Shown: piece by piece, positions 3,085 through 59,138 of the stretch | Layout: every line of letters begins with the position of its first letter | Numbering within the stretch: the stretch's first letter is position 1 | Origin: Octopus bimaculoides | Lineage: Eukaryota | DNA: 64,000 bases | Reading direction: 5' to 3' | NCBI RefSeq assembly: GCF_001194135.2 | Contig: NC_068982.1 | Location: forward strand, 136,282,147 to 136,346,146 | Notes under the pieces: model-generated | Seen by the model: only the letters and a program-made list of their open reading frames with translations | Told to the model about the DNA's origin: nothing | Database searches by the model: none | Made by a program: the position numbers and the translations under genes

Positions 3085-3088
3085 GTAA

Positions 3089-13680: not shown

Positions 13681-13869
13681 CAAGATCTTCTATGTAGTAT
13701 CTAGTTAGAATTGTCTTCATGTCGAGTTCCCCAGTCAAATAGTCTCTGCACTGTGAATATTCATATGCAATCTTCATGTCGCGCAAGTATGCTTGTGCCT
13801 GAATGCATGTGCCTGGCGTACTCTTATCAGACGAGTATTCATGATGAGCATATTGGACTTCAAAATTTT

Positions 13870-18157: not shown

Positions 18158-18513
18158 TTACTCTTTGACTCTTTTACTTGTTTGAGTCATTCGACGGCAG
18201 CCATGCTGGGGCACTGCCTTTAGTCGTAGAAATCGAGCCCAGGACTTATTCTTTGTAAGCCTAGTACTTATTCTATCGGTCACGCTAGGTGACGGAGACG
18301 TAAACACACCAGCATCGGTTGTCAAGCGATGTTGGAGGACAAAGACACACAAACATATACACGCATACATATATATACATACATATATACGACGGGATTC
18401 ATTCAGTTTCCGCCTACGAAATCCACTCACAAGGCTTTGGTCGGCCCGAATTTATAGAAAAAGACACTTGTCTAAGGTGCCACGCTACTTACCACACAGC
18501 CACTCTTGCACCT
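18158..18513 (-). mobile_element. tRNA-derived SINE, family B (head partly deleted)
   Basis: Reverse complement: GAGTGGCTGTGTGGTAAGTAGC head, internal (TA/TG) tract, GACAACCGATGCTGGTGTGTTTACGTC and tail GGCAGTGCCCCAGCATGGCTGCCG...GTAAAAGAG. Confidence 0.85.
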
Positions 18514-20129: not shown

Positions 20130-20958
20130 TTGTATATATATATATATATATATATANNNNNNNNNNNNNNNNNNNNNNNNNNNNNNNNNNNNNNNNNNNN
20201 NNNNNNNNNNNNNNNNNNNNNNNNNNNNNNNNNNNNNNNNNNNNNNNNNNNNNNNNNNNNNNNNNNNNNNNNNNNNNNNNNNNNNNNNNNNNNNNNNNNN
20301 NNNNNNNNNNNNNNNNNNNNNNNNNNNNNNNNNNNNNNNNNNNNNNNNNNNNNNNNNNNNNNNNNNNNNNNNNNNNNNNNNNNNNNNNNNNNNNNNNNNN
20401 NNNNNNNNNNNNNNNNNNNNNNNNNNNNNNNNNNNNNNNNNNNNNNNNNNNNNNNNNNNNNNNNNNNNNNNNNNNNNNNNNNNNNNNNNNNNNNNNNNNN
20501 NNNNNNNNNNNNNNNNNNNNNNNNNNNNNNNNNNNNNNNNNNNNNNNNNNNNNNNNNNNNNNNNNNNNNNNNNNNNNNNNNNNNNNNNNNNNNNNNNNNN
20601 NNNNNNNNNNNNNNNNNNNNNNNNNNNNNNNNNNNNNNNNNNNNNNNNNNNNNNNNNNNNNNNNNNNNNNNNNNNNNNNNNNNNNNNNNNNNNNNNNNNN
20701 NNNNNNNNNNNNNNNNNNNNNNNNNNNNNNNNNNNNNNNNNNNNNNNNNNNNNNNNNNNNNNNNNNNNNNNNNNNNNNNNNNNNNNNNNNNNNNNNNNNN
20801 NNNNNNNNNNNNNNNNNNNNNNNNNNNNNNNNNNNNNNNNNNNNNNNNNNNNNNNNNNNNNNNNNNNNNNNNNNNNNNNNNNNNNNNNNNNNNNNNNNNN
20901 NNNNNNNNNNNNNNNNNNNNNNNNNNNNNNNNNNNNNNNNNNNNNNNNNNNNNNNNNN

Positions 20959-20989
<31 letters not shown>

Positions 20990-21663
20990 AATACCATTCA
21001 ATATACACATGATTTAGATACGAGCTACTATTAATTTCATGGAGTGAAACCACAATAGACTGGCAAATTCATATATCAAGCCTGGTGTTTCCAACCAATA
21101 TTTCAAACTCAAATATGGAACATAGACGCTCTCTTCAGAAACGAAAAAGAATAATAAATAAACAAAGAAAATACAACGGATAAAATGCTGGTCTCTCAAA
21201 AAACACCACGAAAAAGGACAAAAGGAAGATAAAGGTGAAAAGTGGGAAAATAGCAAAACAGTTGAAGAGGTAAAAGGAAAAAAAATAAGATAATGATAAT
21301 AATATATATGTATGTATGTATATATACATGTGTGTGTGTGTGTGTGCAAGTGTGTGTGCTTGCGTATATATATNNNNNNNNNNNNNNNNNNNNNNNNNNN
21401 NNNNNNNNNNNNNNNNNNNNNNNNNNNNNNNNNNNNNNNNNNNNNNNNNNNNNNNNNNNNNNNNNNNNNNNNNNNNNNNNNNNNNNNNNNNNNNNNNNNN
21501 NNNNNNNNNNNNNNNNNNNNNNNNNNNNNNNNNNNNNNNNNNNNNNNNNNNNNNNNNNNNNNNNNNNNNNNNNNNNNNTATATATATATATATATATATG
21601 TGTTTACATTAAAACAGACACGAACAATTATATTTCTTAAATTTGACAGAAATGACGAGGTTG

Positions 21664-24185: not shown

Positions 24186-25440
24186 TCCCTTCATCGGAGA
24201 CAGAAAAAATAAAGTTATCTATTATTATATCCATAGGCGGATATTTTTAGTATGAAGTGGTAAAGAGTATGATGTGCTGAAAAAAGAGAGAACAGTACTT
24301 GAAGAGTAGTTTCATTCCCGTGGTAAATATCCGTGTAGAAATTCGTGCAGATTAATCCTTGTGTGAATAATCCGGAAATTTATGTTGGAACGAAAGTTTA
24401 TATAGCTTAGGTGGCAGAGGTATATATATTCCATCTTGCAATAGATTTTTGCTTGTTTACTTGAAGGATGTCCAAGCCAAGTGAAAAGTTAGTGGTAATT
24501 AGGTCAAGTCAAGACGATAGAATTTGGAAGGGGATAGAGAAGATATAGAGGCGGAGGATGGAAGCGATATATTTATGGTCAGTTAGTCTTAACAGGGTAG
24601 AGGGGAAGAGCATATATAGTGAAGGAGGAATAGGGGGATGAGGTTAAAAGGTCGAATGAGTAGGAAAGAATGCGTGTGTGTAGTATACAGGTGGTGGGGG
24701 TATGAGTGATAAACGAAGGACAGATATAAAGGAGAGGGATGGGTGGGAAAGATAGTAGTATCATATTTTTGGATGCTGCCAAGCCTATTTATAGACGGTG
24801 GAAAGGGATAGAAAGAGGTGACGTAGTCTGTTTGTGTAGGTAGTGTTCTTGTTAAATTGAGAATATGAGAATTAGATTTGGTGGTATATGTGTGGTGAAA
24901 TGATCGAAAGGAAATAATCCTATTTCAAAAAGATGGTGAAAGATGGATGTTTTTGCCAGGTTGAATATGTTGCCTATGGGGGGTTGTATTATTATGTTGC
25001 GTGATCATTTGCGCAATTTTGTTTGTGATAGAACCTGAATGTGGTTGCAGTTGCTAAACGCTTCATTATATCGATTAAGTGGGAGAATTGTATTTTAAAA
25101 TATGGAACGCCTCCGTTAGGCAAAGCTTGCAATTGGAGCGCTGGCCCTGGTATAGAGTTCCAGAGTCTAGGATGGACCATTTTAAGGTGTATTGGGTATT
25201 TTTGTTTTTGAGGTGATGAATATGATTGGCTAATGTTGTAGATTTACTATGTTTGTCGTATCTAAAAGAGTGCATGTGGGCTGCGTAGCGATGTTTAAAG
25301 TTAATAGTTGCACCAATGTACGTGGCAGTAGAGTTATGTAATAGATTTTTGACGGTGCATTTATATATTACATTGTATCTTACGCAATGTGTTTGAAGCG
25401 GGCAGATAGTCCCGGAGCGACAGTTACAAGTGTAGGAGGC
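24186..25440 (-). mobile_element. Penelope-like element 3' part: GIY-YIG endonuclease plus pLTR-like tail
   Basis: CNCRSGTICPL..C..NVIYKCTV...TYIGAT.NFKHRY..H..SF...STTLANHI...W.IL...CKLCLTEAFHIL (25075-25440). A partial hammerhead-like CCGAUGAAGGGA at 24186-24197 is cut by the gap. Confidence 0.85.
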
Positions 25441-27152: not shown

Positions 27153-27162
27153 TATGTTTTAT

Positions 27163-27550
27163 ATTTTACTTGCTTCAGTCATTAAACTGCGGCCATGATG
27201 AGGCACTACGCTGAAGAATTTTTAGTAGCCCCTACCACTTATTTTGTAAAACCCTGGTACTTATTCAGCATCTGTTTTGCCAAACATCTTGTTTACGGGG
27301 CATGCAATTACCCCACTAATTGTTGTCAATGGGAATGCAGGACAAACAGACACAACGACACACATACATCGATGTAAATATAAGATGGACTTCTTTCAGC
27401 TTTCGTCTACGAAATGCACTCACAAGGCTTCGGTTGCCCCGAAGCTATAGCAGAAGACACTGAACCAAATTGCTACACGGTGAGACTGAACTCGGAACCA
27501 TGTAGTTGGGAGGGAAGCAAATTTCTTACCACACAACCACAGCAGCGGCT
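27163..27550 (-). mobile_element. SINE B, older diverged copy
   Basis: The head, AAATGCACTCACAAGGCTT core and TTTTACTTGCTTCAGTCATT tail are recognisable. Confidence 0.75.
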
Positions 27551-30500
27551 ATGTATATATATGTGTGTGTGTAGGGTTTGAAGTAATTTTCGATAACTAG
27601 TTATGTAACGCTTTCAACCCGTTTCAGAGAACAATGAAGAATGATATTTTCACTGAATATTTATGTTTTTTATATGTTTGACTTCGTTGAAAAAGATCTA
27701 GAGTTTAATTTGGATGAAAAATGTTCTTTGCTATTTTGTATCTACTTGTGTGTATGTGTGTGCTTATATGTGCGTGTATGTATATGTGTCTATGAGCGTG
27801 CATGTGTTTGGTGAATCTTTGGAACCTACATTTTTTTTTTCAACTAACTCATATAAAAACTCATAGATGTTCTGTGAATAATATCACTCCTGAAACGATA
27901 TAGATAGATAGATACACACACACAAACACACACACATGCGCACGCATATTAGAAAGACCAAAACAATACAATTGTGTATTGGAAATAGTGAGTAATGCAA
28001 GCATAATTTTTTTTACGAGAGAGTATCAAGTGAATAACCGTTACCATTGAGTTAACATTAATATAGGCCAAAATATCATTAACCTTTACGCTACGGCTTC
28101 TATCGACGGAAAGTGAATTTACATTTATGTCTATGGTTGTTGCCTTCGCAACTTGCTTTACCTCCGTCTTGGCCAATCTAGGTTGAAAAGTAGTACAGCT
28201 TTGGCTCAAAGTTTCTTGTTTACTTTTTTTGAAAACTAAATAACCCACAAGTACCCTGTCTCGTGTGTTCTTTTATTAAGAAATATGTAGGGCATGTTTT
28301 AAGCGCCTTTGGTCGCTAGTTCTTACGTAAAAGTGTGAAGCTTTATTGCATCTTAACACTAACTTAATTGACAATGTGATATGTACTGTATTTATATTTA
28401 TGAGAATGCACCAGCAACTGTATTTATGACGTGCTTTTGTATTTGGTGATAATAAGTGTTGTAAACTTACTACGATGAAAGGTAAACGACAAAACGTGGA
28501 TGGGATGCGACTATTAAAAGCACTTACGTGCAGAATGTCTTATCTTAATGTACAGTTTGTAGCCGGTTGAGTCAATATTGTTGGTAGTATAACTTCATGT
28601 CAAATAAAATGTGTGCAGTTGGCTATTCTTATAACCGAATTTAGATTCTTTGTGTCATTGGTATCGCTAAAAATACTTATTTCGCAATACATAGATATTA
28701 TGCATGCATATATGCATTTATGAATGTGCATGTGCATTTTTATGTGAATACATATGTGAATATATATTAAGAATGGATCGATGGATGCATTATAAGCATA
28801 TAGGTGTGTTGTTTGAGTGTATAAATATGTTTCGCAATACGTGGTTTTACATTATATCCGTTATATTTATGCATGAATACTTACATGCAAGTAGAGAACA
28901 AGGCCCGTTTCTCTGTAATAGTTGAATGCTTCCAAAGTCAACACCCTTTACATCAATGGATTCTTGAATCTATCCTGTTCCAATGAATGCTACAAAATCT
29001 GTGATATTCCTGAAAATGTAATGCAAAGACGTTGCAACCAAAAACGTAACGAAAGAATATTATACAAATTACATCAGGCTTAACAAGTAATATGGTAATC
29101 ATATCTTTTCTCTCACGAGACAGTGATATTTGAGATACATAACTGGAAATTGAGTAAATGATTATTACAAACAACATTTCCAGAGATAAACTGGAAGCTT
29201 CTGAGAAATATCCACAGGGAAATCTACGCTAGGAAAGAAATGACTGTGCATGAAACTCTTGTTCAGTTCACATAGCCTTTAAATGATGTTTGCTTGATAA
29301 AAGCATCGGTAATATATACAATAGACATATGCGTTGAAATGAAAAGAAAACATCTGACTGTAGAACCCTTAAGATATAGAGTTCTCTTGAATGTTTGACA
29401 TAGCAGATTATTGCAGTAAGTTGCAGTAAGTGGGACAAGTTACAGTTCCGTCAGAAAAGAATGGTCCGATTAGTCCTTGTGATAAGCCGCATGAAGTCTT
29501 TCCGTAATATGCGGCTTCTCTGATTTCTTTACTACAATATGTTACATATGTTTAGTTTGGATCAATATATTTGTTATGTTTAATGAGATTTTTAAAATTT
29601 TACGAACTCTTCAGCCGAATAAAATTATGTTGAAGATATACTGACGGATCGTTTTGCTGTAGGTAGCACAGGATCATAAAATTCACATATAACAGATAAA
29701 TTCGTCCTTATCGTTTTGGTAACTGTTTAAGTCCACCTCAACCTGCTGCGTAGTTTATTTTCGATTATTGTATTTGCGTAGCATTTTTAAATGTTCTATT
29801 AATGAGTTTTCCATTGTTAAAGCTGTGTGTAATTTGGAATTTTATAAGTGTTGTTACTGCTTTAAGCAAATGTATTTTTATACCTACATCAAAGAAATTA
29901 GATTAGAATCATTAGTTGATATCATTACCATCTACCATTGTATTTCACAAAAAATAATAATTCCAATCTGGAAATAAGATTAATGACCGAGCACTACAAT
30001 AAATAAATAAATAAATGAACTTGCATATATTGCATGCGTAATAGTATATTTTTTTAACAAATGTTATACATCAGCTATGTTTCCCAATTAAAATTTTGAT
30101 AAGGTATATAAATTTTTTTTATGGCATATGGAGTTGATAAAATGTATTCTGCTACTGAGTTTTCTACAACGGTACGCAATATCTAAGAAATCTTCCATGC
30201 ATTAGCAGGTTCATGTATATATATNNNNNNNNNNNNNNNNNNNNNNNNNNNNNNNNNNNNNNNNNNNNNNNNNNNNNNNNNNNNNNNNNNNNNNNNNNNN
30301 NNNNNATATATACAGTAGTTATATTGGATAACATACGTTTAACTACATTCTAATGGAACGTATATCTAAACAACGGTGTGTGCATCTAAGCAGTAAACAC
30401 ACACACAAGTAGGCACCATCACGCAAATGTAGGAACAGTTTCTTCATGAGCATCTATTACCTTACCTTGTTCAATGAAATGTCATGGATCACCTCTCTCC

Positions 30501-33806: not shown

Positions 33807-34024
33807 TATTCTATTCTACTCTAGGCACAAGGCTCCGAAATTTTGGGGGAGTGTGCAAGTCGATTAGATCAACCCCTGCACGCAACTGGTACTTAATTTA
33901 TGGACTCCAGAAGGATGAAAGGCAAAGTCGACCTCGGCGGAATTTGAACTCAGAACGTAAAGACAGACGAAATACCGCTAAGCATTTCGTCCGGCATGCT
34001 AACGTTTCTGCCAGCTTGCTGCCT
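33807..34024 (-). mobile_element. SINE A, tail A1
   Basis: Full head and central domain with tail CCTTGTGCCTAGAGTAGAATAG. Flanked by AGCAAATATT at about 33795 and at 34031. Confidence 0.9.
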
Positions 34025-34040
34025 TTCCCTAGCAAATATT

Positions 34041-34270
34041 TATTTCCTTATTGACCACAAGGGGCTAAACATACAGGGGACAAAGAAGGACAAACAAGAG
34101 GATTATGTCGGTTACATCGACTCCAGCGCATAACTGGTACTTATTTAATCGACCCCGAAAGGATGAAAGCAAAGTCGACCTAGGCGGAATTTGAACTCAG
34201 AACGTAACGGCAGACGACATACCGCTAAGCATTTCGCCCGGCATGCTAACGATTCTACCAGCTCCCCGCC
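34041..34270 (-). mobile_element. SINE A, tail A3 (Tx1-LINE-like tail)
   Basis: Same head and central domain, but the tail is GTCCTTCTTTGTCCCCTGTATGTTTAGCCCCTTGTGGTCAATAA. TSD CCTTTCC(C/T)TAGCAAATATT at 34022-34040 and 34270-34288. Confidence 0.9.
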
Positions 34271-36315: not shown

Positions 36316-36364
36316 TGCTGTTATCATCGATTAATTGGTTGATTATTTTATGAAGTCGTTTGAG

Positions 36365-36580
36365 TGTGTGTGATTGTGTGTCTGTGTTTGTCCCCCCAAC
36401 ATCGCTTGACAACCGATGCTGGTGTGTTTATATCCCCGTAACATCGCGATTCGGCAAAAGAGACATATAGAATAAGTACTAGGCTTACAAAGAATAAGTT
36501 CTGGGGTCGATTTGCTCGACTAAAGGCGGTGCTACAGCATGGCCACAGTCAAAAGACTGAAACAAGTAAAAGAGAAAAGG
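36365..36580 (+). mobile_element. SINE B, 3' half
   Basis: GTCCCCCCAACATCGCTTGACAACCGATGCTGG...GGCGGTGCTACAGCATGGCCACAGTCAAAAGACTGAAACAAGTAAAAGAG. Confidence 0.85.
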
Positions 36581-37617
36581 AGTATATATATANNNNNNNN
36601 NNNNNNNNNNNNNNNNNNNNNNNNNNNNNNNNNNNNNNNNNNNNNNNNNNNNNNNNNNNNNNNNNNNNNNNNNNNNNNNNNNNNNNNNNNNNNNNNNNNN
36701 NNNNNNNNNNNNNNNNNNNNNNNNNNNNNNNNNNNNNNNNNNNNNNNNNNNNNNNNNNNNNNNNNNNNNNNNNNNNNNNNNNNNNNNNNNNNNNNNNATA
36801 TATATATATATATATACAGATACACATTTATAATATGTGTATGTATACGTACAATCATCCACCTGCATTTGCCGAATTCGCCGTAAGTCTTTAGGATATT
36901 GTATATTTGCTGTATCATAGAGTTTTATCTGATACCAATGATATAAGAAGGCAGAATTGTATTGTACTCTTTCAACGGCTAATAAGTGTAACGCTACAGG
37001 TCATGTTGAAAGCATTGTTATGCAACCTTTTCATCTATATGCAACATGAGATCAATCTTTTACGAAAAGAGCACCGAACATCAAATCAAATTTCTTTCGC
37101 TGCTAACATCATATGGCTATCGATCTACTCATTTAACGTTCAACGTTACAGAATTATATTCCCGTCGATTAATATCGTTCAAAGGGATGATGTTATCGAT
37201 AATTTTGTTGAAATGCATTTGATACTTTTCGATGTTGTTTTTTGATGTATTTCATAATATTGATTCCATATATATATATATTTGCATTTAGCTTTCTTTG
37301 ATGTTGTAACTTAAAAATATTACTACACATTTTATTTATTGTTATTATTGTTATTTAGGTAACATTTTTTTTTGCTGTTTTTACTTTCACATATTTAAAA
37401 AGAAATGATATTTTAGGTATCATGGAAAGCTAATCAGTTTCTACTAAATTTCTAATCTTCTAACCTGCGTTTAGAGCAATATGCAGAAACAAATTGTGAG
37501 TAAATTATTTCCATATATGTACGTGTACATATATTGTATGTATGCACGTATGTATATATGTATGTATGTATGTATGTATTCATGCGTGCATGTATGTTTG
37601 TATGCATGCATTGATGG

Positions 37618-39732: not shown

Positions 39733-40128
39733 CTCTCTCTTTTACTCTTTTACTTGTTTCAGTCATCTGACTGCGGCCATGCTGGGACAAATCGCCCCCA
39801 GGACTTATTCTTTGTAAGCCTAATACTTATTCTATCGGTCTCTTAGGCCGAACCACTAAGTTATGTGGACGTAAAGACACCAGCATCGGTTTCCAAGTGA
39901 TGGTGGGGGGGGGGGCAAACACAGACACACAAACATATACACACACATACATATATATATATACATATATACGACGAGCTTCTTTCAGTTTCCGTCTACC
40001 AAATCCACTCAGAAGTATTTGGTCGGCCCGAGGCTATAGTAGAAGACACTTGCCCAAGGTGCCACACGGTGGGACTGTACCCGGAACCATGTGGTTGGTG
40101 GGCAAGCACTTACCACGCAGCCACTGCC
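39733..40128 (-). mobile_element. SINE B, near full length
   Basis: Head, core, internal (TA/TG) tract and (AAAAGAGT)n tail are all present. Confidence 0.9.
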
Positions 40129-41050
40129 GTTACGGAAATTAAATGCCTCTAACTGTACACACAGTTTATACTATAATTTAGATGCGCATTTTATATTCGT
40201 ATTCCGTTCAAGACCATTGCGGAATGGCCAGTCAATGATGTGCGCCCTTGTTCTCTACTGAGAGAACATAGATCACTATATTCATAGTAAAATGTTCGCG
40301 TATCGAGTAGCTTTCTTAATCAAAGGAACTTTATAACTTGAATTAATGAATTAAGATATATTATCCGAATAACCGCGAACCTGTCTTTCAACCATATTAA
40401 CACATATTTTGTCACGACAGAAGTTACTTAGGTACAGCTTGGAGTATACATGAGTATGTGTATTTAAAATACTAAGAAATTTAAAGTCGCGTTAGCTGTT
40501 CTCGTTTAGAACATCCCTAATTTGAGCCAAACTACGAAAATCTGTTCGTGACAATACGTTCTTTTTGGAGGACACGTAAAATTGTATTGTGTAATGCGTT
40601 CTGTGTAAATTCTAAGATTGAAGATTCCCTTCTGATAGCTTTTGCTTCTTTTACTTTTCCAACAGAGAAGTTGTCACAGATTTTAGAGGATTACTATAAA
40701 ATATTCAATCTTATCCACATCAGTTAACTTGCTCGTCATTATATTCTATTTCTGGAATTGCAATAACTGTTATTCTAATTAGCTAGCGCTAATTACGAGT
40801 ATTTTCAGCAATCTCATAATAACAGTAGCGAGTATTACAGTGAAATGTTTAACTTATACAAAACGTTCTGAAAGAACAACTTTGTTCATGATTATGCACC
40901 AAAAACAACAGTTTTAATCCGTTCCACAACGGATTAATTATCTTGTACCATCCTACTACTAAATCGGTATCGTTCTCCGAATAAATCTAAAGATATTTCA
41001 ATTATGATTGACAATCGATTGTCAAACATAATCACACGCACATACATATA

Positions 41051-41463
41051 CTCTTTTACTCTTTTACTTGTTTCAGTATTTTTGACTGTGGCCATGCTGG
41101 AGCACCGCCTTTAGTCAAGCAAATCGACCCCAGGACTTATTCTTTGGAAACCTAGTACTTATTCTATCAGTCTCTTTTGCCGAACCGCTAAGTTACGGGG
41201 ACGTAAACACTCCAGCATCGATTGTCAAGCGATGTTGGGGGGACAACCACAGACACACAAACACATACACACATACATATACATACATATACATATATAC
41301 GACGGGCTTCTTTCAGTTTCCGTCTACCAAATCCACTCACAAGGCTTTGGTCGGCCCGAAGCTATAGTAGAAAACACTTGCCCAAGATGCCACGCAGTGG
41401 GACTGAACCCGGAACCATGTGGTTGGTAAGCAATCTATTTGCCACACAGCCACTCCTACGCCT
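41051..41463 (-). mobile_element. SINE B, full length
   Basis: GGCGTAGGAGTGGCTGTGTGG head, GGGTTCAGTCCC B-box-like motif and complete body and tail. Confidence 0.92.
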
Positions 41464-42247
41464 ATCCATATAATGTAATGTTCGTTTGTTGATAGGATAA
41501 GCAAGAAAGCACACAACGAGCTGAAAATATTAAGTGATGGAATCAAGTGTTATAACGGAGCTGGTTCAACTTTTATTCATGAAAATTGCAATACTTGGAG
41601 GCGTAACATACACAATTTGACACTTAGGGGTTTGAACCCGAAAATGTCTCAAAGATATTCCTGAATTAAAGCGCACCTTTTGAAAAGTAACTTGTTATTC
41701 ATATTGGTGCAAAATTTAATGATAACAACAAAATTATTTTACTGTTATATTTAATAAATATTGTTGCGTACAGTTATTAAATTTTAGGCGGTGATATAAT
41801 ATTCAAGTACAATGTCTTTCAAGCTACGCCACCAAATAATTAATTCTGCTCAACGCCTCATGTATAATATAAATTGAATAAAGGTAGGAGATGGGGCTTT
41901 ACTATTGTGTCTGTACTAATGTTGAGTAGGACCCGAAAGCACTCTCATTCTCATTCTCATTCTCCATTCTTATGTCTCTATGTATCCTACTATATGTATG
42001 TGTGTATCGACATACATACACAAACAGACGCGGACATACACATACGCACACACATATATACATATATATGTTTGTGTGTGTGTTTGCGTACGTGCGAATG
42101 TGTGAGTGAGTGTTTGTGTGCGCGTGTGTTTGGGTACCTGTATGCGTTAGAGTGCGTGGGTGAGCGTGCGTGTCGTACAGAGAGAAAATAATAGTATCTT
42201 CTTAAATTATTATCTTAACTGTTACGTATCATTCGTTTAATAAATAC

Positions 42248-42679
<432 letters not shown>

Positions 42680-43870: not shown

Positions 43871-44563
43871 ATTTTATATGTATATGTTGTTGTGTTTTCG
43901 TTCTTTGGGTAGAGCACTGCTGTAAAATAAGAATGTAGGATTGAAGTATATTCCAACGTGTCCTTTTATGCATTTTTGGCTTTATTTGCGGGACATGACG
44001 AACAACGTCCGTCCTTTATCTTGACGGTCATCATTTTCGTATGGTACCGGGGCGTTCATTTGTGTTGTTAAAATATTTTGCACGTGTAGGTTTTCGTACT
44101 TTTTGTGTAACAAGGTTAAAGTACGCACTTCTCGATTGTTATTCTTGGATTTGATCTTCTTCTTCTTCTTCTTCTTCTTCTTCTTCTTCTTCTTCTNNNN
44201 NNNNNNNNNNNNNNNNNNNNNNNNNNNNNNNNNNNNNNNNNNNNNNNNNNNNNNNNNNNNNNNNNNNNNNNNNNNNNNNNNNNNNNNNNNNNNNNNNNNN
44301 NNNNNNNNNNNNNNNNNNNNNNNNNNNNNNNNNNNNNNNNNNNNNNNNNNNNNNNNNNNNNNNNNNNNNNNNNNNNNNNNNNNNNNNNNNNNNNNNNNNN
44401 NNNNNNNNNNNNNNNNNNNNNNNNNNNNNNNNNNNNNNNNNNNNNNNNNNNNNNNNNNNNNNNNNNNNNNNNNNNNNNNNNNNNNNNNNNNNNNNNNNNN
44501 NNNNNNNNNNNNNNNNNNNNNNNNNNNNNNNNNNNNNNNNNNNNNNNNNNNNNNNNNNNNNNN

Positions 44564-45236
44564 GAATATGGAATATATAATATATAATATATAAATAGAT
44601 GGTAAAATGAAATGAAGTATTGAATGTCTTATTGAATATTTGAAATATGTCTTATTGAATATATTAAATATTGAGTATTCAATATAGAGAATTAGATATA
44701 TGAAGGCGTTTCTCTTTCTGGTATCTCCTGCTCATTAGTATTGATATCAATGTTATACCATGACAGGGTATTGTTGGATGATAAACACACAATATTTAGG
44801 ATATTTTATTCCAAGAAACAGTCAAAACTATGTCCTTTTTGAGTTATTTTAAAGCTGCTAATTTTCATGAAGATATCTTTTAAAGCTATTAAAGGTTCTC
44901 TTTCTTTGTTTTTACGTTTTTTTAGCCTTCGCTTCTCTAATTTCTCAACTCTTCATCAGTTGCCATTAAATAAATATCTAGACTACTATCATTGTTCAGA
45001 CATACAAGAACTCTATTTGAAGGATTGGTTTTCATGGCAAGTAATCTTTCTTTTGTTTGACGCATCAATGAACCAATTTTGACACATTTGATTGGATAAA
45101 TAAATTCCTCTTCTCGCTGACTTTCAGTTGAATTTGTTTGGTCTGTTTTCACTTCAATTCGAGCTTTTCTCAATGGAGCTTCTTAGTCATCTTGTTTGTT
45201 AGAATTTTTATATTATATATTATATATTCCATATTC
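44564..45236. repeat. Approximately 28-bp AT-rich inverted repeats flanking the WDR3 fragment
   Basis: GAATATGGAATATATAATATATAATATA at 44564-44591 and its reverse complement TATATTATATATTATATATTCCATATTC at about 45209-45236. The left copy abuts an N-gap. Confidence 0.75.
44690..45200 (-). pseudogene. WDR3: Intronless fragment of WDR3/Dip2/Utp12 (U3 snoRNP WD40 protein); 2 in-frame TAA and 1 frameshift
   Basis: Translation D*EAPLRKARIEVKTDQTNSTESQREEEFIYPIKCVKIGSLMRQTKERLLAMKTNPSNRVLVCLNNDSSLDIYLMATDEE(fs)EKLEKRRLKKRKNKEREPLIALKDIFMKISSFKITQKGHSFDCFLE*NILNIVCLSSNNTLSWYNID. By eye and from recall, this aligns over about 130 aa with human WDR3 LSCRKAGSIMREGRDRVVNLAVDKTGRILACHGTDSVLELF...EIQKKMDKKMKKARKK...SLQDEIQRVTNIKTSAKIKSFDL...LKAVFLLQNNLVELYSLN. 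Confidence 0.8.
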
Positions 45237-45429
45237 TATATCCCACATTAATTTTACAAGACTATAAATAAAACATAAAAAACATATATGTACTCATATA
45301 TGCTTGTATACATACAAGCATATATGGGTACAGGACATCACACAAAAAAACGTTAAACACAATGAGAAACGAAAACATAAAGACGAAGACAGAAAACGAA
45401 ATTTTTTTCGAACAACGAAAAAAACAGAG

Positions 45430-45745
45430 AAATGAGACATGCAAGAAGACCTGAGAATTGAAATCGCTAAGATGTAGCATCTACGAGAGTCAAACATAAA
45501 AGTTGTCCCGTCATCGTCGGAGCACTGGGTTCAATACCATTCATCCTGAGAAAACATCTGGATACTTTAGAAATATCATACAATCTAGGTGTATTGAAAA
45601 CCTTGGCACTACTTGGAACTGCACACATATTGCGGAAAGTACTGTTTGAGTTCCTTGTTGTGACTTGACAGGCAGTACAAACCCCCGGTAGACATAATAT
45701 CTTCAGTCAACAACATCACGATATTGGATACTGTGCGTCGCCTTG
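45430..45745 (+). mobile_element. R4/Dong-type RLE LINE 3' end followed by (AAT)n
   Basis: DLRIEIAKM*...KVVP/VIVGALGSIP...LLGTAHILRKVL, then a short 3' UTR and an (AAT)n array at 45748-45850. Confidence 0.8.
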
Positions 45746-45852
<107 letters not shown>

Positions 45853-45889
45853 TCATGATGATCATGATGATGATGGTTTCAAATGTTGT

Positions 45890-46084
45890 CACAAAGGCAA
45901 CATTTTGGTGGGAGGGAATATGTCGATTACATCGACTGCAGGGCTTCGCCTGTCCTTAATTTATCGACCTGAAATGATGAAAGGCAAAGTCAACCTCGGT
46001 AGATTTGCAGTCAGAACGTAGCGACAGGCGAAATACCGCTAGTCATTTCGTCCAGCGTGCTAACCATTCTGCGAGTTCGCCGTC

Positions 46085-46085
<1 letters not shown>
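45890..46085 (-). mobile_element. SINE A, tail A2, inside (AAT)n/(GAT)n
   Basis: Full head and central domain with tail CCTTTGTGACAACATTTGAAACC. Confidence 0.8.
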
Positions 46086-46138
<53 letters not shown>

Positions 46139-46433
46139 GTAATAATAATTATAATAATGACCACGATGATGATGATGATGATTAGGATGACGATGTTGAA
46201 AATATTATAAGTAGATTATGTTACTATGTCTCTAGATTGTTTTCTAATTGCGAGGAACTTGGAAATATCTTTAATGATGTATAATGGACTTCGGACAGTG
46301 TTATGGTCTCATTATAACTATAGGCATAAATAATGTTTTCGGTGATTGAAACCATAACAACGTCAGGTATGCCTTATTAGTCTTCAAAGTTATTTACTAT
46401 TATGATGCAATCTCTAGCTGACGCGATCTCTGT

Positions 46434-46488
<55 letters not shown>

Positions 46489-46489
46489 G

Positions 46490-46528
<39 letters not shown>

Positions 46529-47113
46529 GAGATTGCGTCATAATAGCAAATAACTTCGAAGACTAATGACTTTCGCCTGACATTTTTATGTGTCACCCGT
46601 TGAAACGCTGTTCATCCCGACGAAGTCGTCATTGCTTCAGATGCGCATAACGTGCCTCGAGGCAACGGCAATGTACTCTCGAAATGGCCATGGATGTTGG
46701 ATGTTAAATTGTAATGATTCGCGGCTGTATTGACTTTTACATTTTTTATACAATTTTCATTGTTGGGTATAATTTTAATTTATATTCTTTTCTCTTTAAA
46801 TTTTTAGTCGATTAACTTAGTGTAATAATCTATTTTAGATAATTTTTAGTCGGTTTTTATATACGTTTTCTGGGCAGGTCCAGTGTATTTTATACATTTT
46901 TATATATGATTTTTACCTGGCATTTGGTTTTTCGACATTGGAAAGCCATAGTATGATTTATATGTAATAAATGGTAGAAACGTGGATATATACAGTTCGT
47001 TAACTTGAATTTAATGTTTGTTCTTAAATTATATTACTGATTTGTGTCTCTGTCCCAATATCATTTGAGCACTTCTCTCCTGCAGTTCTATGTATATTCG
47101 TCTGTTTTAATCG

Positions 47114-47178
<65 letters not shown>

Positions 47179-47582
47179 TGTCTGTATGTATGTATATATG
47201 CATTATAGTTATAAGCATAACAATTATTATTAATTTTAATGAAACATGTATATAACGTAACTGAATAATTCACGGAATGACGTTCATATTTTGTTTTCCA
47301 AAATACATTCTGTGATGTTTATGACTGAAAGCTTGTGAAATGAAACTTAATTACAACGAGCTATTTTGTCGCTGCATTTTCAGTTGAAGTGTAATAATGC
47401 ACTTGGATTTCTAAATACTAGTTATACATCATACAATTAAAAATTTTAATTGGAGTATTTAATTATATAATGTCTATAAATGTAATCTGTTCTCACACTC
47501 GTACATACGTTTGTATGTATGTATGTATCTATGTAAGTATGTATGTACGCATGTATGCATGCTTCTATGTATGTATGAAGGC

Positions 47583-47638
<56 letters not shown>

Positions 47639-47984
47639 ATGTGTGTTTGTGTGTATACGTGGGTACATGCGCGTGTGTGTGTGCACGTGTGTACATGTGT
47701 ATGTGTTTGTGTGCAAGCATGTGTTTGTGTGTCGTGTGTCCGTGTGTGTCATGTGTTCGCGTGTGTCTGTGTGTGTATGTATCCGGAATATGCCACTCAT
47801 AGATCAGGCAAAATCGTTGTTCAAATCTGCCAAAAGAAAAATGGCAGAAAACATTATGTGCATAAAGCATCATTATTTTATTAGTATCAAGTGATACCTT
47901 ACATGTGGTAGTAATGACATTAATACACATACATACATACATACATACATACATACATACATACATGCAAACATATATACAATG

Positions 47985-48870
47985 TCCTACCTGACGGTAG
48001 CAAGCTCCCCAGGAAGAACTACTTTGCTGATGATCTCCGATACAACCCCAAATCAACCGTATTAACATACTTCAAAGAAGACCTGGATGCGAAACTCTCA
48101 GCATACCATAAAAAGGCTATGCATTGGTATGCTTCTAGAAGACTTAATGAACATAGAAATATCGACACGAAGCGAAACTTATATTGGACTCGTGACCGCT
48201 ACTTCCCATCGCACTTCGAGGGTTACGCATTTTCAATTCAAGTACTGGAGATTGCTACTAAATACCTAATAAACAAAAGTGACAGTGACGATCTTGTAGA
48301 TCCAAGATGCAACCAAAACTGAAGATTATGTAATATTTCTGTTGAAGACACCACGCGTGATTATCAGCTGCTCAAGTATTTAATCAAGGTACTACATCCG
48401 TACGCGACACGACGGTGTCAAAACAAAAACAAAAACTATACAATGCCATTAGGCAAAAACACTGTCCTGGAATAAATATAGAGAATCCCCCTGTTATTGA
48501 ATATATACTATCATCAACACAAGAAAACTAAGCCGGGTATTGTTGTTTGGGGCAGATAAGAAAATGCATAGACCGTAATAGAGGTCAGCCGCCAGGCTGA
48601 TGTGAATATCTGCTTGAAAATCAAAAACAAAGAGGATTACTAGGAACAACTGTTTCGAGACCTCCTGCTTCTATATCATGATTATAAATTCATATCTATA
48701 CCAAAAATGAGTGCGCTTCGTTTTGCAAATAAATATCTAAGTGGCAATCTGGCTAAGCTATGGTTTTAAGATATAGGGAAATCAACCAACAAACTCGCAC
48801 ATTACAAATGGAGTCTGTAAGTAAAAGAGTAAAAATATGCAAGACTTTCTGAGTTTAAAATGTGACAATG
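47985..48870 (+). mobile_element. R4-like RLE LINE 3' fragment (second subfamily, like 35785-36315)
   Basis: KKAMHWY...SHFEGYAFSIQ..EIATKYL, *RLC.ISVEDTT, RHDGV, KPGIVVW..IEVS..ADVNI and QMESVSKRVKICKTFLSL motifs. Confidence 0.75.
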
Positions 48871-48974
48871 TCTTTGTTACATTCCAGCGATGCATCTTTG
48901 TATCTTTGTTACAAACTTGCCCCAAACCGAGAGGAAGACGTTAAATAATTAAACTCAGAACAGAACCTATACAT

Positions 48975-48985
48975 ATATATCTATA

Positions 48986-49021
<36 letters not shown>

Positions 49022-49022
49022 C

Positions 49023-49070
<48 letters not shown>
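48975..49070. repeat. (TATC)n microsatellite
   Basis: Read directly from the sequence. Confidence 0.95.
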
Positions 49071-49071
<1 letters not shown>

Positions 49072-49072
<1 letters not shown>

Positions 49073-49222
49073 TGGGTTGTATGGAAAGTTCGTGCCGATT
49101 TATAGTAGCTTACTTTTCGAATTATTTGCCAAGAAACCACCTCAATTCTGGGAAGAGTGTATTTTTAAGTTAAAGGAAAGATGGAGACGCATTGCATTGT
49201 GCAACAAAATGGTTCATATGTG
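49072..49222 (+). mobile_element. Mariner-derived deletion element: left TIR joined to transposase C-terminal coding end
   Basis: TA plus TTGGGTTGTATGGAAAGTTCGTGCCGATTT is followed within about 25 bp by FAKKPPQFWEECIFKLKERWRRI..QQNG.Y. No right TIR is seen. Confidence 0.6.
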
Positions 49223-49229
49223 TGTGTGT

Positions 49230-50340
49230 TATTGTGGTGTGTGTGTTTTATTGTGGTGTGTGTGTTTTATTTTGGTATATGTTTGGTTTTATAGTAATGT
49301 TTGGCGTTTGTGTGTTACTGTGGTTTGTGTGTGTGAGGGCGTTGCATGTGACACGGTAGGTGTTTCGATATCTAGTTGTGGTTTATATTTGTAGATAAAT
49401 TGTTTTTCCTTGATTAATCTCTGTTGATGGGTAAAAGAGTCTGAGAATGCGTAGCATGGAGAGATTTTGAAATTGAACAAGGTCATTTCCCCATAGTTTG
49501 CAATGTGACCACTTTGGGGAATCTTCCTTATGCTGTCATCCCAGATCTGTTGGCGGTGTATCGTCATTCTTATGCGTAATGAACCACCCGTCTGTCCTAT
49601 GTAGTTTTGTCGGCACCCACCACATGTTATTGTGTAAATTAAGTTACAGGTGGAGTTTACTTTTACTTTAAGGGTTTGTCCTTTAAATTTGAATTTTGAT
49701 CCTTCCATCAGGAAGAAGCAGGTTCTGCAATTTATTCTTCAGTTTTTTTAAAAATTTTTTATTTTCAAGTAGAATGGGCATGTTTCTGTAAATGAGGTCA
49801 AATATTTCAGAGTTCCTGGGATTGGATGTTGACACATATGGTAAAATATTTTTCTTTATTTTGATTTTCGTCTTCCTTAGTTCCTAGGTATCAACATGTT
49901 TTAGCTCTGTCCATTCCCACTAGGCGATTAAGACTAGTGGGAATCCCCTTTGAATGTGCTTGTTTTTAAGTTCATCTCGTCTTTGTTCATGTTTAGAAGG
50001 GTTTGACACTATTGAACAAATTCGTTTTACCAGGAAAAGAGAAATATTCAGCTTGGTGTGTTTAGGATGATATGATGTGAATAGAAGGTACTGTTTGGTG
50101 TCCGTGCGTTTATAAACTACACACTCCATATACAAGTCAAAAATAACTGGAAGAGGTACCTAGATGATTGCATTACCTTCTGGCAGGGAAACCTGGATAC
50201 AATCACACGATTGAAAAATTTGCTGAACAACTTAAACAACAACGTCCAATTTACAATGGTGTTTAACACCAAGAAACTTGCCTTCCTGGATATTTTAATC
50301 ACCAACAAGGATGGGAAAATAGAAATGGACATATTTTATC
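49230..50340 (-). mobile_element. Penelope-like element (RT thumb, linker and GIY-YIG) with an inverted 5' RT segment
   Basis: Minus strand: YKRTDTKQYLLFTSYHPKHTK...RGFP, ILPYVST.NPRN and TCNLIYTITCGGC.QNYIGQTGGSLRIRMTIH...EKQFIYKYKPQLD. Plus strand 50140-50340: WKRYLDDCITFW...QFTM...LAFLDILI...MDIFY. Confidence 0.9.
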
Positions 50341-50484
50341 TTCCGGCAGCTGGGGTTAAACAAGTAGTAAAATGAAACAGCCACATTGATGTGGCGATTA
50401 TCTTTACTTTTTAGTGTAGTTACTACTCTCATCTCTTATTGAGATTTTAAAAGTAGTTATTTTGCTTGCTGCAAATCAGTGACT

Positions 50485-50544
50485 GATGGTCGGTTCGCGA
50501 CTGAGAATGAGCAACTAGCTCGAAACCGAATCGGTCTCGCTATC
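50485..50544 (+). ncRNA. Type I hammerhead-like motif with bulged stem I
   Basis: GAUG-gucgguuc-GCGA-CUGAGAAU-GAGC-AACUA-GCUC-GAAAC-CG-AAU-CG-GUC-UCGC-UAUC. All three stems pair; the core reads CUGAGAAU rather than CUGANGA(N). Confidence 0.6.
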
Positions 50545-51224
50545 TTGTTGTCTGCTGGAACATTGTAGGGGTTCGCTCCCTTGCAAGCAGTATATATGCA
50601 CAAGATTCAGCGCTGCAGAGTTAACTAACTGGCGGAAGATTTACTTGGATTTAAACTAGTAGTAACATTGAACAGCCACATTGATGTGGCGATGATGATT
50701 AATGGCCGAATCACCATTGTGTAGACTCGAAAGTAAGGTCTCGAGACCGTGAGGTAGAGTAGAATAATATTTATAGAAAGCAATCTTGTATCTGTCGATT
50801 CACTGACTGTTTTTCTGTCACAAAACACCGGTGATTGACCTGATGGTACCCGCGCTTTTGTTATATATACAGCGAATTAGTCCGTTTATGAAAATACCGA
50901 AGAAAACCTGATGAGAATAATGTGATACTGAACGTGAGGATTTGTGTAAATATGAGCATTATGAATAATTATAAAACAAATTTATTAAAATTCAACCTAT
51001 AAAAATTGAAATGAATTATTAAAATTTCTATTGAAAAACATCTGTAGAGAAGATGAATTTCTATTGAAATCATCGCTGATAAAGCTTTTATATCAAAATG
51101 CTGAGAGAAATTTCTATGAAATTTCCCTGTGGTAAATTTACTAATGCAGACAGGTGTGCAAATATGTCAATGTTGAATGGAAGGATGTGTGAAGAATCTG
51201 TGATTTGATGTTATTATAATTATT

Positions 51225-51257
51225 ATTGTTGCTAATATTACTCTTGTTGGTGTTGTC

Positions 51258-51316
<59 letters not shown>

Positions 51317-51391
51317 CATTATTATTGTTATTGTTGTTATTGTTATTGTTGTTATTGTTATTGTTGTTGTTGTTATTATTATTATTATTAC

Positions 51392-51434
<43 letters not shown>

Positions 51435-51435
51435 T
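51225..51435. repeat. (TTA)n/(TTG)n array
   Basis: Read directly from the sequence. Confidence 0.95.
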
Positions 51436-51690
51436 CCTCATTATTTCATAGCTTGAGGCAAATTTCCATTGCGTCTTGTGGCACGCCTCCTTGTTCCTGA
51501 GGTGCGTGCAGCATTGTTCTTGTGTTGGTGTCGAGTGAATACAGACACTTCTTGTTTCTATATTGCATCAGTTTGATTTGTTTTGGGGTTTGGATTGGAA
51601 ATTGTCTTGTATTAGTGTTTGTATTGTGTGTTGCAAATTGAATTATTCACTTCGGTATCCATCGTGTAGAGTACACGTTGTAGAAGTTGT
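51436..51690 (-). mobile_element. Probable LINE 3' UTR ending in (AAT)n
   Basis: An A/C-rich minus strand ends ...GGAAATAATAAT in the same manner as the R4/Dong copies. It has no coding motif. Confidence 0.3.
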
Positions 51691-51704
51691 TTATTTTAGT
51701 AGTC

Positions 51705-52010
51705 TCGAGTCAATCAAAGGATTGTGAGTGGATGTGTCAACAGAAACTGAAGGAAGCCCATAGTATATATATGTATGCATGTATTTATGTTTGTACTTTT
51801 GCTGTATTTGTTCTACGAATGCTTGACATTCGGTGCAGGTTTGTTTACTTTCGTCTACGATATTAGCTAGCCAAAATAACCGACATGATACGCACCAAGC
51901 TTTAAAAAGTTAATAATGATGTTCGTGTTTTTCGACTAAACATTTCAAGGCAGTGCCCCAGCATGGTCGCAGTCCAATGACCGAAATATGTAAACAATTA
52001 AGTAAATAAA
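51705..52010 (+). mobile_element. SINE B, old 5'-truncated copy
   Basis: TTGTGAGTGGAT...GAAACTGAAGGAAGCCC core and GGCAGTGCCCCAGCATGG tail. Confidence 0.7.
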
Positions 52011-52694
52011 AGACAGATTTGTTTACTGCTTCGAATCTCAGTGTTAAAAACAAGTATATATATATATATATGTATATGTATATACATATATATACATACA
52101 TATGAAGAGAAAGAGAGAAAAATGTGAAAGACAGTTAATACTTATACGCCATTATCTTCACGTATCGATACACTTGATGCATTTAAGCTTTTCCACAATT
52201 TTCAGAACAACCATATATTTTAACCTCTGTATATTATGTTTTTAGACCGTTTTAACTTTGTAAGTCTCCATTTTTGTACATTTTTGCTCTCCAGGTATTG
52301 GTGCACAGATACAAATGTATACGTACATTCGTGTACACAAGCACTCGTTCGCATTTATTTACATTCAATTGTATTCATCTATTAACATATTTATGTACGC
52401 GCATGTGACCATGCATGAAGCCCTGTGAGTGCATGTTAATATGGATGTTTACATACACTTTACCATAAAGAGCGAGGCGATGCAAGTCTATACAAGTATT
52501 GGGTATTTATTTGACTATGGACGAATATGTGGTTGTATATTGCGTGTATGTGTAGGTATACTTATAGAAATATTATACGTTTGTTTGCACATGTGTGTTT
52601 ACGAATGTTAGGATGTGTATAAGTGCCAGTGTGGATGTGTGGATGTGTATCTATGACTATGTATATATGTACATGCATCTAAACACACACATAC

Positions 52695-52757
52695 ATGAAC
52701 CCGGAACCATGTGGTTGGAAAGGAAGCTATTTACGATACAGCCACTCCTGCGCCTAT
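52695..52757 (-). mobile_element. SINE B head fragment
   Basis: TGAACCCGGAACCATGTGGTTGG...CAGCCACTCCTGCGCCT. Confidence 0.75.
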
Positions 52758-53360
52758 ATATATATATATATATATATATATNNNNNNNNNNNNNNNNNNN
52801 NNNNNNNNNNNNNNNNNNNNNNNNNNNNNNNNNNNNNNNNNNNNNNNNNNNNNNNNNNNNNNNNNNNNNNNNNNNNNNNNNNNNNNNNNNNNNNNGTGTT
52901 GGTGAACAACTCTCTTTAAAAGCAAAAAATAATTACCTGACGATTAAATTTTACTTTATGTATTTTATGAAAATTTAAATATTGTTCAAATATTTTACTC
53001 CATTCCACATTCCAAATTATTCTTTTAAAATAAATGGAGAAATTGGATGATATTACTGTGAACTTTGGTTTCTCCCAAATAACTGAGAAAAACTTAGGTG
53101 ACTGTATTATTTTGAATGAAGTAGAAGATAACCACTCCAAAATACATGAATCCAACTCTCAGAGTTGCGAGCTGACAGTCTGCTTACACTATTTATCTAT
53201 AGAAAGAAATTTCCTCCACGACAAAGTAAAGTGGATGGCTTTTGTACGGGTTGGAATATGCCTCAAGCATATTTGACAACTTTGAGCTATTGATATATTA
53301 GTCTACATTGGCTTCAAAGAAGATATGATATTAAATATCGTAAAACTAGCAAAAGTAGTA

Positions 53361-55289: not shown

Positions 55290-55703
55290 GCGCAGGAGTG
55301 GCTGTGTGGTAAGTAGCTTGCTTACCAACCACATGGTTCCAGGTTCAGTCCCACTGCGTGGCACCTTAGGCAAGTGTCTTCTACTATAGCCTCGGGCCTT
55401 GTGAGTGGATTTGGTAGACGGAAACTGAAAGAAGATTGTCGTATATATGTATGTATATATGTCTGTGTGTCTGTGTGTGTGTATGTTTGTGTGCCTGCTT
55501 GTCCCCCCAACATCGCTTGACAACCGATGACGGTGTGTTTACGTTCCCGTAACTTAGCGGTTCGGCAAAAGAGACCGAGAGAATAAGTACTAGGCTTCCA
55601 AAGAATAAATCCTGGGGTCGATTTGCTCGACTAAAGGCGTTGCTCCAGTATGTGGCCGCAGTCAAATGACTGAAACAAGTAAAAAAGTAAAAGAGAGAAA
55701 GAG
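55290..55703 (+). mobile_element. SINE B, full length
   Basis: Complete head, core, internal microsatellite and tail. Confidence 0.92.
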
Positions 55704-56607
55704 TATGTAACAACATTCATGCGTTCTATTTTGTTGTATTAGAATGAATAAAATTAAACGCATTATATATTAAACTGGCGAGTAAGAACGGTTTATTATA
55801 TGTGTGCATGCACATGTATGAGTGGATGGATATGCTTGTGTACGCACACGGATGTAAGGATGTATCTATATCTGGTATATACAGATATGTGCTAAACTCG
55901 ACCCTTTCCTGGTTTCCTGAATATTAAAATCCCTTCATTCAAATGAATCGTTCATGTATATATATATATATNNNNNNNNNNNNNNNNNNNNNNNNNNNNN
56001 NNNNNNNNNNNNNNNNNNNNNNNNNNNNNNNNNNNNNNNNNNNNNNNNNNNNNNNNNNNNNNNNNNNNNNNNNNNNNNNNNNNNNNNNNNNNNNNNNNNN
56101 NNNNNNNNNNNNNNNNNNNNNNNNNNNNNNNNNNNNNNNNNNNNNNNNNNNNNNNNNNNNNNNNNNNNNNNNNNNNNNNNNNNNNNNNNNNNNNNNNNNN
56201 NNNNNNNNNNNNNNNNNNNNNNNNNNNNNNNNNNNNNNNNNNNNNNNNNNNNNNNNNNNNNNNNNNNNNNNNNNNNNNNNNNNNNNNNNNNNNNNNNNNN
56301 NNNNNNNNNNNNNNNNNNNNNNNNNNNNNNNNNNNNNNNNNNNNNNNNNNNNNNNNNNNNNNNNNNNNNNNNNNNNNNNNNNNNNNNNNNNNNNNNNNNN
56401 NNNNNNNNNNNNNNNNNNNNNNNNNNNNNNNNNNNNNNNNNNNNNNNNNNNNNNNNNNNNNNNNNNNNNNNNNNNNNNNNNNNNNNNNNNNNNNNNNNNN
56501 NNNNNNNNNNNNNNNNNNNNNNNNNNNNNNNNNNNNNNNNNNNNNNNNNNNNNNNNNNNNNNNNNNNNNNNNNNNNNNNNNNNNNNNNNNNNNNNNNNNN
56601 NNNNNNN

Positions 56608-57060: not shown

Positions 57061-57425
57061 ATGGCCTTGTGGTAAGAAGCTCGCTTCCAAACCTTTGGCA
57101 AGTGTCTTCTACAATAGCCTCGGCTGACCAAGGCCCAGTAAGTAGATTTGGTAGACAGAAACTAAAAGCCGGTTTTATATAAATATGTGTGTGTGTGTCT
57201 TTGTGTCTGTGATGTCCCCTCTCCATTTTTGACAACCAGTGCTGGTGTGTTTTTATTCCCGTAACTTAGCAGTTTGGCAAAAGAAACCAATAGAATATTA
57301 CCAGGCTTTAAAAATAAGTACTGGGGTCCATATATTTGATAAAAAATTGTTCAAGGCGGTGCCCCAGCATGGACGCGATCAAAATAACTGGCTCAAGTAA
57401 TAGATAAAAGGAAAAAGATAAAAAG
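57061..57425 (+). mobile_element. SINE B, diverged
   Basis: Head partly deleted; core and GGCGGTGCCCCAGCATGG tail present. Confidence 0.75.
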
Positions 57426-58627: not shown

Positions 58628-59115
58628 GCATGTGTGGCTGTGTAGTATGAGCTTGATTCCGAACCATATGGTCCAGGGTTCAGTCCCACTACGTGGCATC
58701 TTAGGCAAGTGTTTACTACTATATATATATATATCTCACTGCGTGGTACCTTGGGCAAGTGTCTACTACTATAACCTCAGATCGACCAAAGCCTCGTGAA
58801 TAGATTTTGTAGACGGAATCTGAAAGAAGCCCGTCGTATATACGTATATGTATATGTGAGTGTATGTGTGTGTGATTGTATTTGTGTTTGCCCCCACCCC
58901 CCCANNNNNNNNNNNNNNNNNNNNNNNNNNNNNNNNNNNNNNNNNNNNNNNNGCGCTGATGTGTTTATGTTCTCCTAACGTAGCGGTTCGGCATAAGATA
59001 ACAATAGAATAAGTACCAGGCTTTTAAAAATAAGTACTGAAGGCGATATATTCTTCAACGTGATGCTCCAGTATGGCCGATGTCAAATGGCTAAAACAAG
59101 TAAATGATAAAAGAT
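58628..59115 (+). mobile_element. SINE B with duplicated head segment (head at 58628-58722, restart at about 58736), gap inside
   Basis: CACTACGTGGCATCTTAGGCAAGTGT is followed after a (TA)n by CACTGCGTGGTACCTTGGGCAAGTGT and a complete body. Confidence 0.75.
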
Positions 59116-59138
59116 AGCTTCGTTAATTTATTGTGTGC

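Follow-up and report, generated by a model that had tools for sequence, protein, structure and literature searches.

The 499-nt stretch of WDR3 homology on the minus strand of this Octopus bimaculoides sequence (44709-45207 of the window, by which we mean the whole 64-kb stretch of DNA that was analysed) is an ordinary partial processed pseudogene, and its sole oddity is a 33-nt inverted repeat that brackets it and whose left arm is cut by an assembly gap. We put the probability at about 0.9 that the fragment is a dead, partial, host-derived retrocopy of WDR3, that is, a processed-pseudogene fragment without function. For the element as a whole, the most likely function is none.

The identity of the fragment rests on its peptide as well as its nucleotides. 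When its two reading frames were joined, the minus-strand conceptual peptide matched human WDR3 (PDB 7mq8 chain LQ, residues 266-395) with an E value of 2.7e-8. An exhaustive search of 1.8 billion representative proteins returned Octopus WDR3 (P0001) as the top match at E=9e-77, in a cluster made up of WDR3 proteins from Octopus sinensis, O. bimaculoides, and O. vulgaris; the runner-up outside Octopus in the same search was a pycnogonid (sea spider) protein that was 34% identical. A word-indexed protein search with the peptide gave no match, nor did a Pfam run. By tblastn, residues 222 to 310 were 92% identical to O. bimaculoides WDR3 and 86.5% identical to the O. sinensis and O. vulgaris proteins, and overall the peptide was about 88 to 92% identical to the host protein. 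Exact look-ups of four open reading frames from the fragment and its flank, meant to find the same locus in other assemblies, returned no recorded match.

The parent reference was the 32-kb O. bimaculoides WDR3 locus (L001; GCA_001194135.2, CM046602.1) with its protein P0038, which by tblastn has at least 23 coding exons there. Using this locus to define splice sites, we aligned the fragment to the spliced host mRNA and located its extent, its matching blocks, and its junctions as follows.

44709 to 45207, minus strand: partial processed pseudogene (retrocopy fragment) of host WDR3, from blastn against the WDR3 locus and the spliced-mRNA alignment
10726-10834, 12910-13014, 14958-15050, 15389-15500, and 16605-16689 of L001: parental blocks matched by the fragment (blastn)
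45201/45200, 45102/45101, 44997/44996, 44906/44905, and 44794/44793, minus strand: exon junctions in the copy, from the spliced-mRNA alignment

The alignment to spliced O. bimaculoides WDR3 mRNA had 95.1% nucleotide identity (481 of 506 columns). The fragment holds the last 7 nt of exon 5, all of exons 6 to 9, and the first 85 of the 191 nt of exon 10, corresponding to approximately residues 222 to 388 of the 900-amino-acid protein. Blastn against the parental locus broke this sequence into five exon blocks, each 92.7 to 99.0% identical, which are contiguous in the window. All five junctions (exons 5/6, 6/7, 7/8, 8/9, and 9/10) are seamless in the copy, whereas the parental gene carries introns of about 2.6, 2.1, 1.9, 0.3, and 1.1 kb at those positions. 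The 5' end of the copy reads AAATTCT/AACAAAC, the sequence in which the mRNA joins exon 5 to exon 6, so a fifth intron (about 2.6 kb) has also been removed. A first blastn impression had taken the 7 nt before 45201/45200 for intron (L001 8180/10733); they are the end of exon 5, and that reading was rejected. No WDR3 intron bases were found in the copy in the spliced-mRNA alignment, and the template was therefore a spliced WDR3 transcript.

The copy is also disabled. Alignment to the parent located the following lesions, all on the minus strand.

45183 to 45185, minus strand: in-frame stop TAA, where the parent has TCA (Ser229)
44806 to 44808, minus strand: in-frame stop TAA, where the parent has AAA (Lys357)
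44945 to 44946, minus strand: 1-nt frameshifting deletion (parent GAAGAA, copy G-AGAA)
After 45156 and at about 44900, minus strand: two 3-nt deletions

Both stop codons lie one base change away from the parental serine and lysine codons. The copy differs from its parent by 19 substitutions, 13 of them nonsynonymous and 6 synonymous, a ratio of roughly unconstrained change; the copy has drifted neutrally since it was made.

Much of the initial annotation, which was made from the letters of this stretch, agrees with these results. It had named the fragment WDR3, which both the human and the Octopus matches bear out, and had described it as intronless, as the five exon-exon junctions confirm. 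Its two in-frame TAA codons and 1-nt frameshift are the ones listed above, although it did not mention the two 3-nt deletions. The start in mid-protein also holds, since the copy begins in the last 7 nt of exon 5. The length of about 510 bp was right in kind, a minus-strand stretch of WDR3, and slightly generous in extent. What did not survive was the description of the gene as divergent: at 95.1% nucleotide identity to host mRNA, and with a peptide close to the host protein, it is not, and the string LVCLNNDS, which had been offered as a sign of divergence, is native octopus WDR3 sequence. The same 95.1% identity decides among the three origins that had been offered. A processed pseudogene was one of them, and it is the one that the identity to spliced host mRNA and the five precise junctions uphold; such identity had itself been named beforehand as the result that would reduce the locus to an ordinary processed pseudogene.

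We then turn to the sequence around the copy, which contains the following features.

45204 to 45236, plus strand: inverted-repeat right arm, built as a degenerate array of heptamers (TATATTA TATATTA TATATTC CATATTC)
44564 to 44596, plus strand: left arm of the inverted repeat, its outer end being the contig end at the N gap
44597 to 44708, no strand: AT-rich spacer of 112 nt, from the left arm to the 3' break of the WDR3 copy
44197 to 44563, no strand: assembly gap of 367 N, which hides the sequence beyond the left arm

The assembly does contain the inverted repeat, whose arms are 33 nt long and complementary at 32 of 33 positions (97%), with an exact core of 28 nt. None of 100 dinucleotide-preserving shuffles gave any matching pair of arms, and with plain microsatellites set aside, this pair is the window's longest inverted repeat within 3 kb. 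As had been noted, one arm abuts the coding sequence and the other abuts the gap: the right arm and the 5' end of the WDR3 homology share 4 nt (AAAT), and the first base of the contig, immediately after the N gap, is also the first base of the left arm. That gap is flanked by (TCT)14 at 44155-44196 on its left and by the heptamer array on its right, and the gap-free contig that holds the fragment spans 44564 to 52781. On the right, the heptamer-like array goes on for some 14 nt beyond the right arm (TATATCC CACATTA). The spacer contains 2.1 copies of a 23-bp tandem repeat (44624-44671) as well as TATTGAATAT motifs, and it has no homology to the WDR3 locus. We found no further copies of the arms or of the 23-bp subrepeat in the window, L001, and L002 (the O. 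sinensis WDR3 locus), about 142 kb of octopus DNA in all, a sample too small to exclude a low-copy arm family. A 28-nt match between the left arm and intronic WDR3 sequence (L001 28875-28903) was only (TA)n microsatellite and was set aside.

The arms are best read as two opposite-facing copies of a degenerate heptamer array in local AT-rich DNA. The contig end truncates the left copy, so their standing as termini of a mobile element is not established, and the description of the fragment as packaged between termini was overstated. The outer end of the left arm is an assembly boundary, and so a target site duplication (TSD) is not readable there. The window has 13 N gaps (e.g., 20157-20958, 21374-21578, 36593-36797, 52782-52895, and 55972-56607), and many of the contig ends that adjoin them consist of (TA)n, (AG)n, (TG)n, or (TCT)n. 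The assembly thus often breaks in simple repeats, which limits how any gap-touching structure can be read. A nearby inverted copy was found at this contig end alone and at no other gap-adjoining contig end in the window.

Other inverted structures occur in the window. Inverted (AAT)n and (ATT)n arrays lie within 300 bp of each other (42279-42331 and 42501-42674), so that inverted simple-repeat pairs are found in other places near the fragment. A near-perfect palindrome (45289-45332; 21-nt arms, 95% complementary, 2-nt loop) is found between the right arm and the nearest LINE remnant. Far from the copy, about 200 bp lie between the arms of a high-complexity inverted repeat (1827-1871 and 2078-2122), in which stretches of 17 and 27 nt match exactly; this pair is a better candidate for a small terminal inverted repeat (TIR) element or a hairpin than the arms that bracket WDR3.

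The copy sits among retroelement remnants, the nearest of which are as follows.

45418 to 45647, plus strand: decayed non-LTR (LINE) ORF2 C-terminal remnant, about 180 nt past the right arm, identified by tblastn with the ORF2-tail proteins P0054-P0098
42742 to 43807, minus strand: decayed 5'-truncated LINE ORF2 remnant, oriented like the WDR3 copy (tblastn with P0042-P0050)

The minus-strand remnant lies about 0.9 kb downstream of the copy, with the gap included. LINE reverse transcriptase or ORF2 remnants are thus found on both sides of the copy as well as elsewhere in the window, a setting that we count in favor of a retrocopy. Decayed non-LTR retrotransposon ORF2 fragments were identified at 4107-7526 (minus) and 13711-15704 (plus), the latter split by two N gaps, with RVT_1 at E=8.8e-11 and sub-threshold zf-RVT (7.5e-6) and Exo_endo_phos (0.0056) matches. 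Two further repeat families were recovered, and their copies are as follows.

36358-36591, 39734-40125, 41042-41476, 18159-18485, and 27157-27564: copies of a repeat of about 400 bp
51715-51994, 55290-55698, 57091-57412, and 58734-59117: the remaining copies of the same repeat
45902-46087, 33840-34268, 229-415, 3086-3258, and 42330-42436: copies of a repeat of about 190 bp

The longer repeat, with at least nine copies in both orientations at 70 to 90% identity, is probably a SINE-like element; ARAGORN detected no tRNA-like gene in the window. The shorter one lies beside long (AAT)n/(ATT)n arrays (e.g., 45746-45850 and 42339-42678), and two of its copies, 198-411 and 3033-3168, are inverted relative to each other and make up a large pair with a spacing of about 2.7 kb. 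A putative GIY-YIG-like motif (YIG…R…H) was seen by eye in the open reading frames at 25075-25440 and 49289-49708 (both minus); a Pfam search of these two frames gave no match for a GIY-YIG (Penelope-like) reading. Self-blast of 36-54 kb against the window revealed neither LTR-type direct repeats nor extra copies of the flanks.

How the copy came to be inserted is less plain than what it is. One of the many retroelements in this region probably supplied the reverse transcriptase that copied the WDR3 mRNA. With the 3' half of the mRNA and the poly(A) tail absent and a TSD not readable, the cDNA would have been incomplete at integration, or its 3' part would have been lost afterwards through a later deletion. 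An incomplete cDNA could have been inserted through template switching, or a chromosome break could have captured it, and the 4-nt AAAT microhomology at the 5' junction may be the trace of that integration.

The copy has several features of processed pseudogenes: homology to a multi-exon parent at a different locus in the genome, no introns and exact exon-exon junctions, disabling stops and a frameshift, and neutral substitutions. It differs from them in that only an internal 499 nt of the approximately 2.7-kb coding sequence is present, without the 3' end or poly(A). No poly(A) remnant was found at the 3' end of the copy, which breaks off 85 nt into exon 10 and continues as CGCCTTCATATATC... 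without an A run, and the copy contains no 3' UTR. A classical L1 product keeps its 3' end and is truncated at its 5' end (PMC5470649). Against a classical 5'-truncated, poly(A)-tailed LINE product, the copy here breaks off midway through exon 10 and begins 7 nt upstream of a junction. Template switching yields partial, poly(A)-less retrocopies, according to the same review (PMC5470649), which also summarizes LTR-mediated retroposition (Derr 1991 and Tan 2016). Like those template-switch retrocopies, the copy is an internal, incomplete coding sequence without poly(A), joined at a short similarity (here AAAT, 4 nt). Unlike them, it does not lie between directly oriented stretches of retroelement sequence; its flanks are AT-rich, noncoding, and inverted, and the nearest LINE remnants are 0.2 to 0.9 kb away. 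A LINE template-switch or twin-priming chimera was considered and rejected, as there is no direct junction, the LINE limits being at about 43807 and about 45418, 0.9 and 0.2 kb from the copy. The retrocopy reading also leaves the 28-nt exact inverted repeat around the copy unexplained, and such a repeat is not expected by chance.

The alternative that survives best, which we still consider unlikely, is that the fragment is secondary: a longer WDR3 processed pseudogene lies, or once lay, elsewhere, and a piece of it was moved here by DNA-level rearrangement (segmental duplication, inversion, or deletion), with the inverted repeat as the scar. Truncation at both ends, the absent poly(A), and the inverted repeat around the piece would fit this account, as would a region that is a patchwork of decayed repeats. 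However, no other WDR3 homology exists across the 64-kb window, where tblastn homology is confined to 45206-44641, and the protein databases give only bona fide Octopus WDR3 isoforms (a cluster of six).

An origin in a TIR or foldback DNA transposon of the Pack-TIR or Pack-MULE type, the first explanation offered by the initial annotation, is very unlikely in our estimate. The arms would be the TIRs and the 112-nt AT-rich stretch a subterminal region, and the interior would have been replaced by WDR3 cDNA through break repair or template switching. In its favor, the inverted repeat is real and is the window's longest once microsatellites are set aside, the captured sequence directly adjoins one arm and shares 4 nt with it, and subrepeats lie beside the left arm. 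A gene fragment of a few hundred base pairs between inverted repeats, with one arm abutted at a microhomology, is also what Pack-TIR and Pack-MULE elements contain. Those elements carry a DNA-level copy of the parental locus, however, and this insert is fully spliced, so genomic DNA was not its source. The criteria of Tan et al. 2021 (PMC8277862, Methods) call for flanking termini of one annotated TIR family and exclude intronless copies of multi-exon parents as retroduplicates, the class to which this copy belongs. No TIR family has been assigned to the arms, and they recur nowhere in the roughly 142 kb made up of the window, L001, and L002. The boundary of an element would be undefined as well, since the left arm ends at a contig end within a low-complexity array and the right array overruns its arm. 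In addition, a TSD is not readable at the gap-cut left arm, the subterminal repeats are one-sided, and transposase is absent nearby. The proposed Pack-MULE-like capture thus finds no support, given a spliced-RNA source, arms that are single in about 142 kb, and a left arm that is a contig end.

More broadly, it is decidedly unlikely that the inverted repeat is mechanistically tied to the insertion at all, whether through a TIR or foldback element or through RNA-templated, microhomology-mediated break repair with snap-back synthesis. If either were true, it would yield a poly(A)-less internal piece of mRNA between inverted local copies. Templated sequence insertions were reportedly described by Onozawa and colleagues in 2014, and a reverse-transcriptase activity of Pol theta is said to have been described by Chandramouly and colleagues in 2021. 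By analogy, the copy may be likened to such templated insertions or to RNA-templated break repair, which would likewise leave internal pieces of spliced transcripts without poly(A) or a TSD. Short inverted templated stretches near the junctions would be a further point of likeness, offered here as a resemblance only.

An artefact, in which either cDNA had contaminated the genomic library or the contig is chimeric, is highly improbable. The contig does begin exactly at the left arm beside the gap, and the 673 bp between the outer ends of the arms would be about the size of a short-insert library fragment. Contaminating cDNA would nevertheless be expected to be about 100% identical to the mRNA, and the copy carries 19 substitutions, three deletions, and two stops in a neutral pattern. 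It also lies inside one gap-free contig (44564 to 52781). With 26 differences from the mRNA in this neutral pattern, the copy is unlikely to be cDNA that contaminated the library.

The retrocopy can also be placed in time. Comparison with the same WDR3 exons of O. sinensis (locus L002) revealed 19 sites at which the copy agrees with O. bimaculoides and differs from O. sinensis (19 of the 24 species-separating sites), 5 at which it agrees with O. sinensis and differs from O. bimaculoides, and 14 at which its state is unique. Given the 19 sites against 5, the copy branched off the O. bimaculoides gene after the split; it arose on the O. bimaculoides lineage later than the separation from O. sinensis. 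These site patterns also make O. bimaculoides, or a species very close to it, the most likely source of the window.

Foreign DNA, acquired by horizontal transfer or as a co-assembled parasite or protist WDR3 that reads TAA as Gln, is refuted: the case had rested on an assumed divergence from molluscan WDR3, and nothing is left in its favor after testing, as the copy is 95.1% identical to host mRNA, agrees with O. bimaculoides at 19 of 24 diagnostic sites, and carries a frameshift too, while its closest relative is Octopus WDR3 and the nearest non-Octopus protein is only 34% identical. The variant genetic code was rejected with it, as the two TAA codons align with TCA (Ser) and AAA (Lys) and neither stands at a Gln.

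Taken together, these results add one more decayed retrocopy to a repeat-rich cephalopod genome, which carries little weight by itself. The copy is usable as a negative result, in that the case for foreign DNA and a variant code vanishes once the host gene is the comparison. If the arms were to define a mobile family, the locus would be a cephalopod Pack-TIR-like element with a retro-derived insert. The internal, poly(A)-less form of the retrocopy hints that it did not arise by classical poly(A)-primed LINE retroposition, a hint that would be worth following only if many such fragments exist genome-wide. What the copy does document is reverse transcription of a host mRNA on the O. bimaculoides lineage after that lineage had parted from O. 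sinensis.
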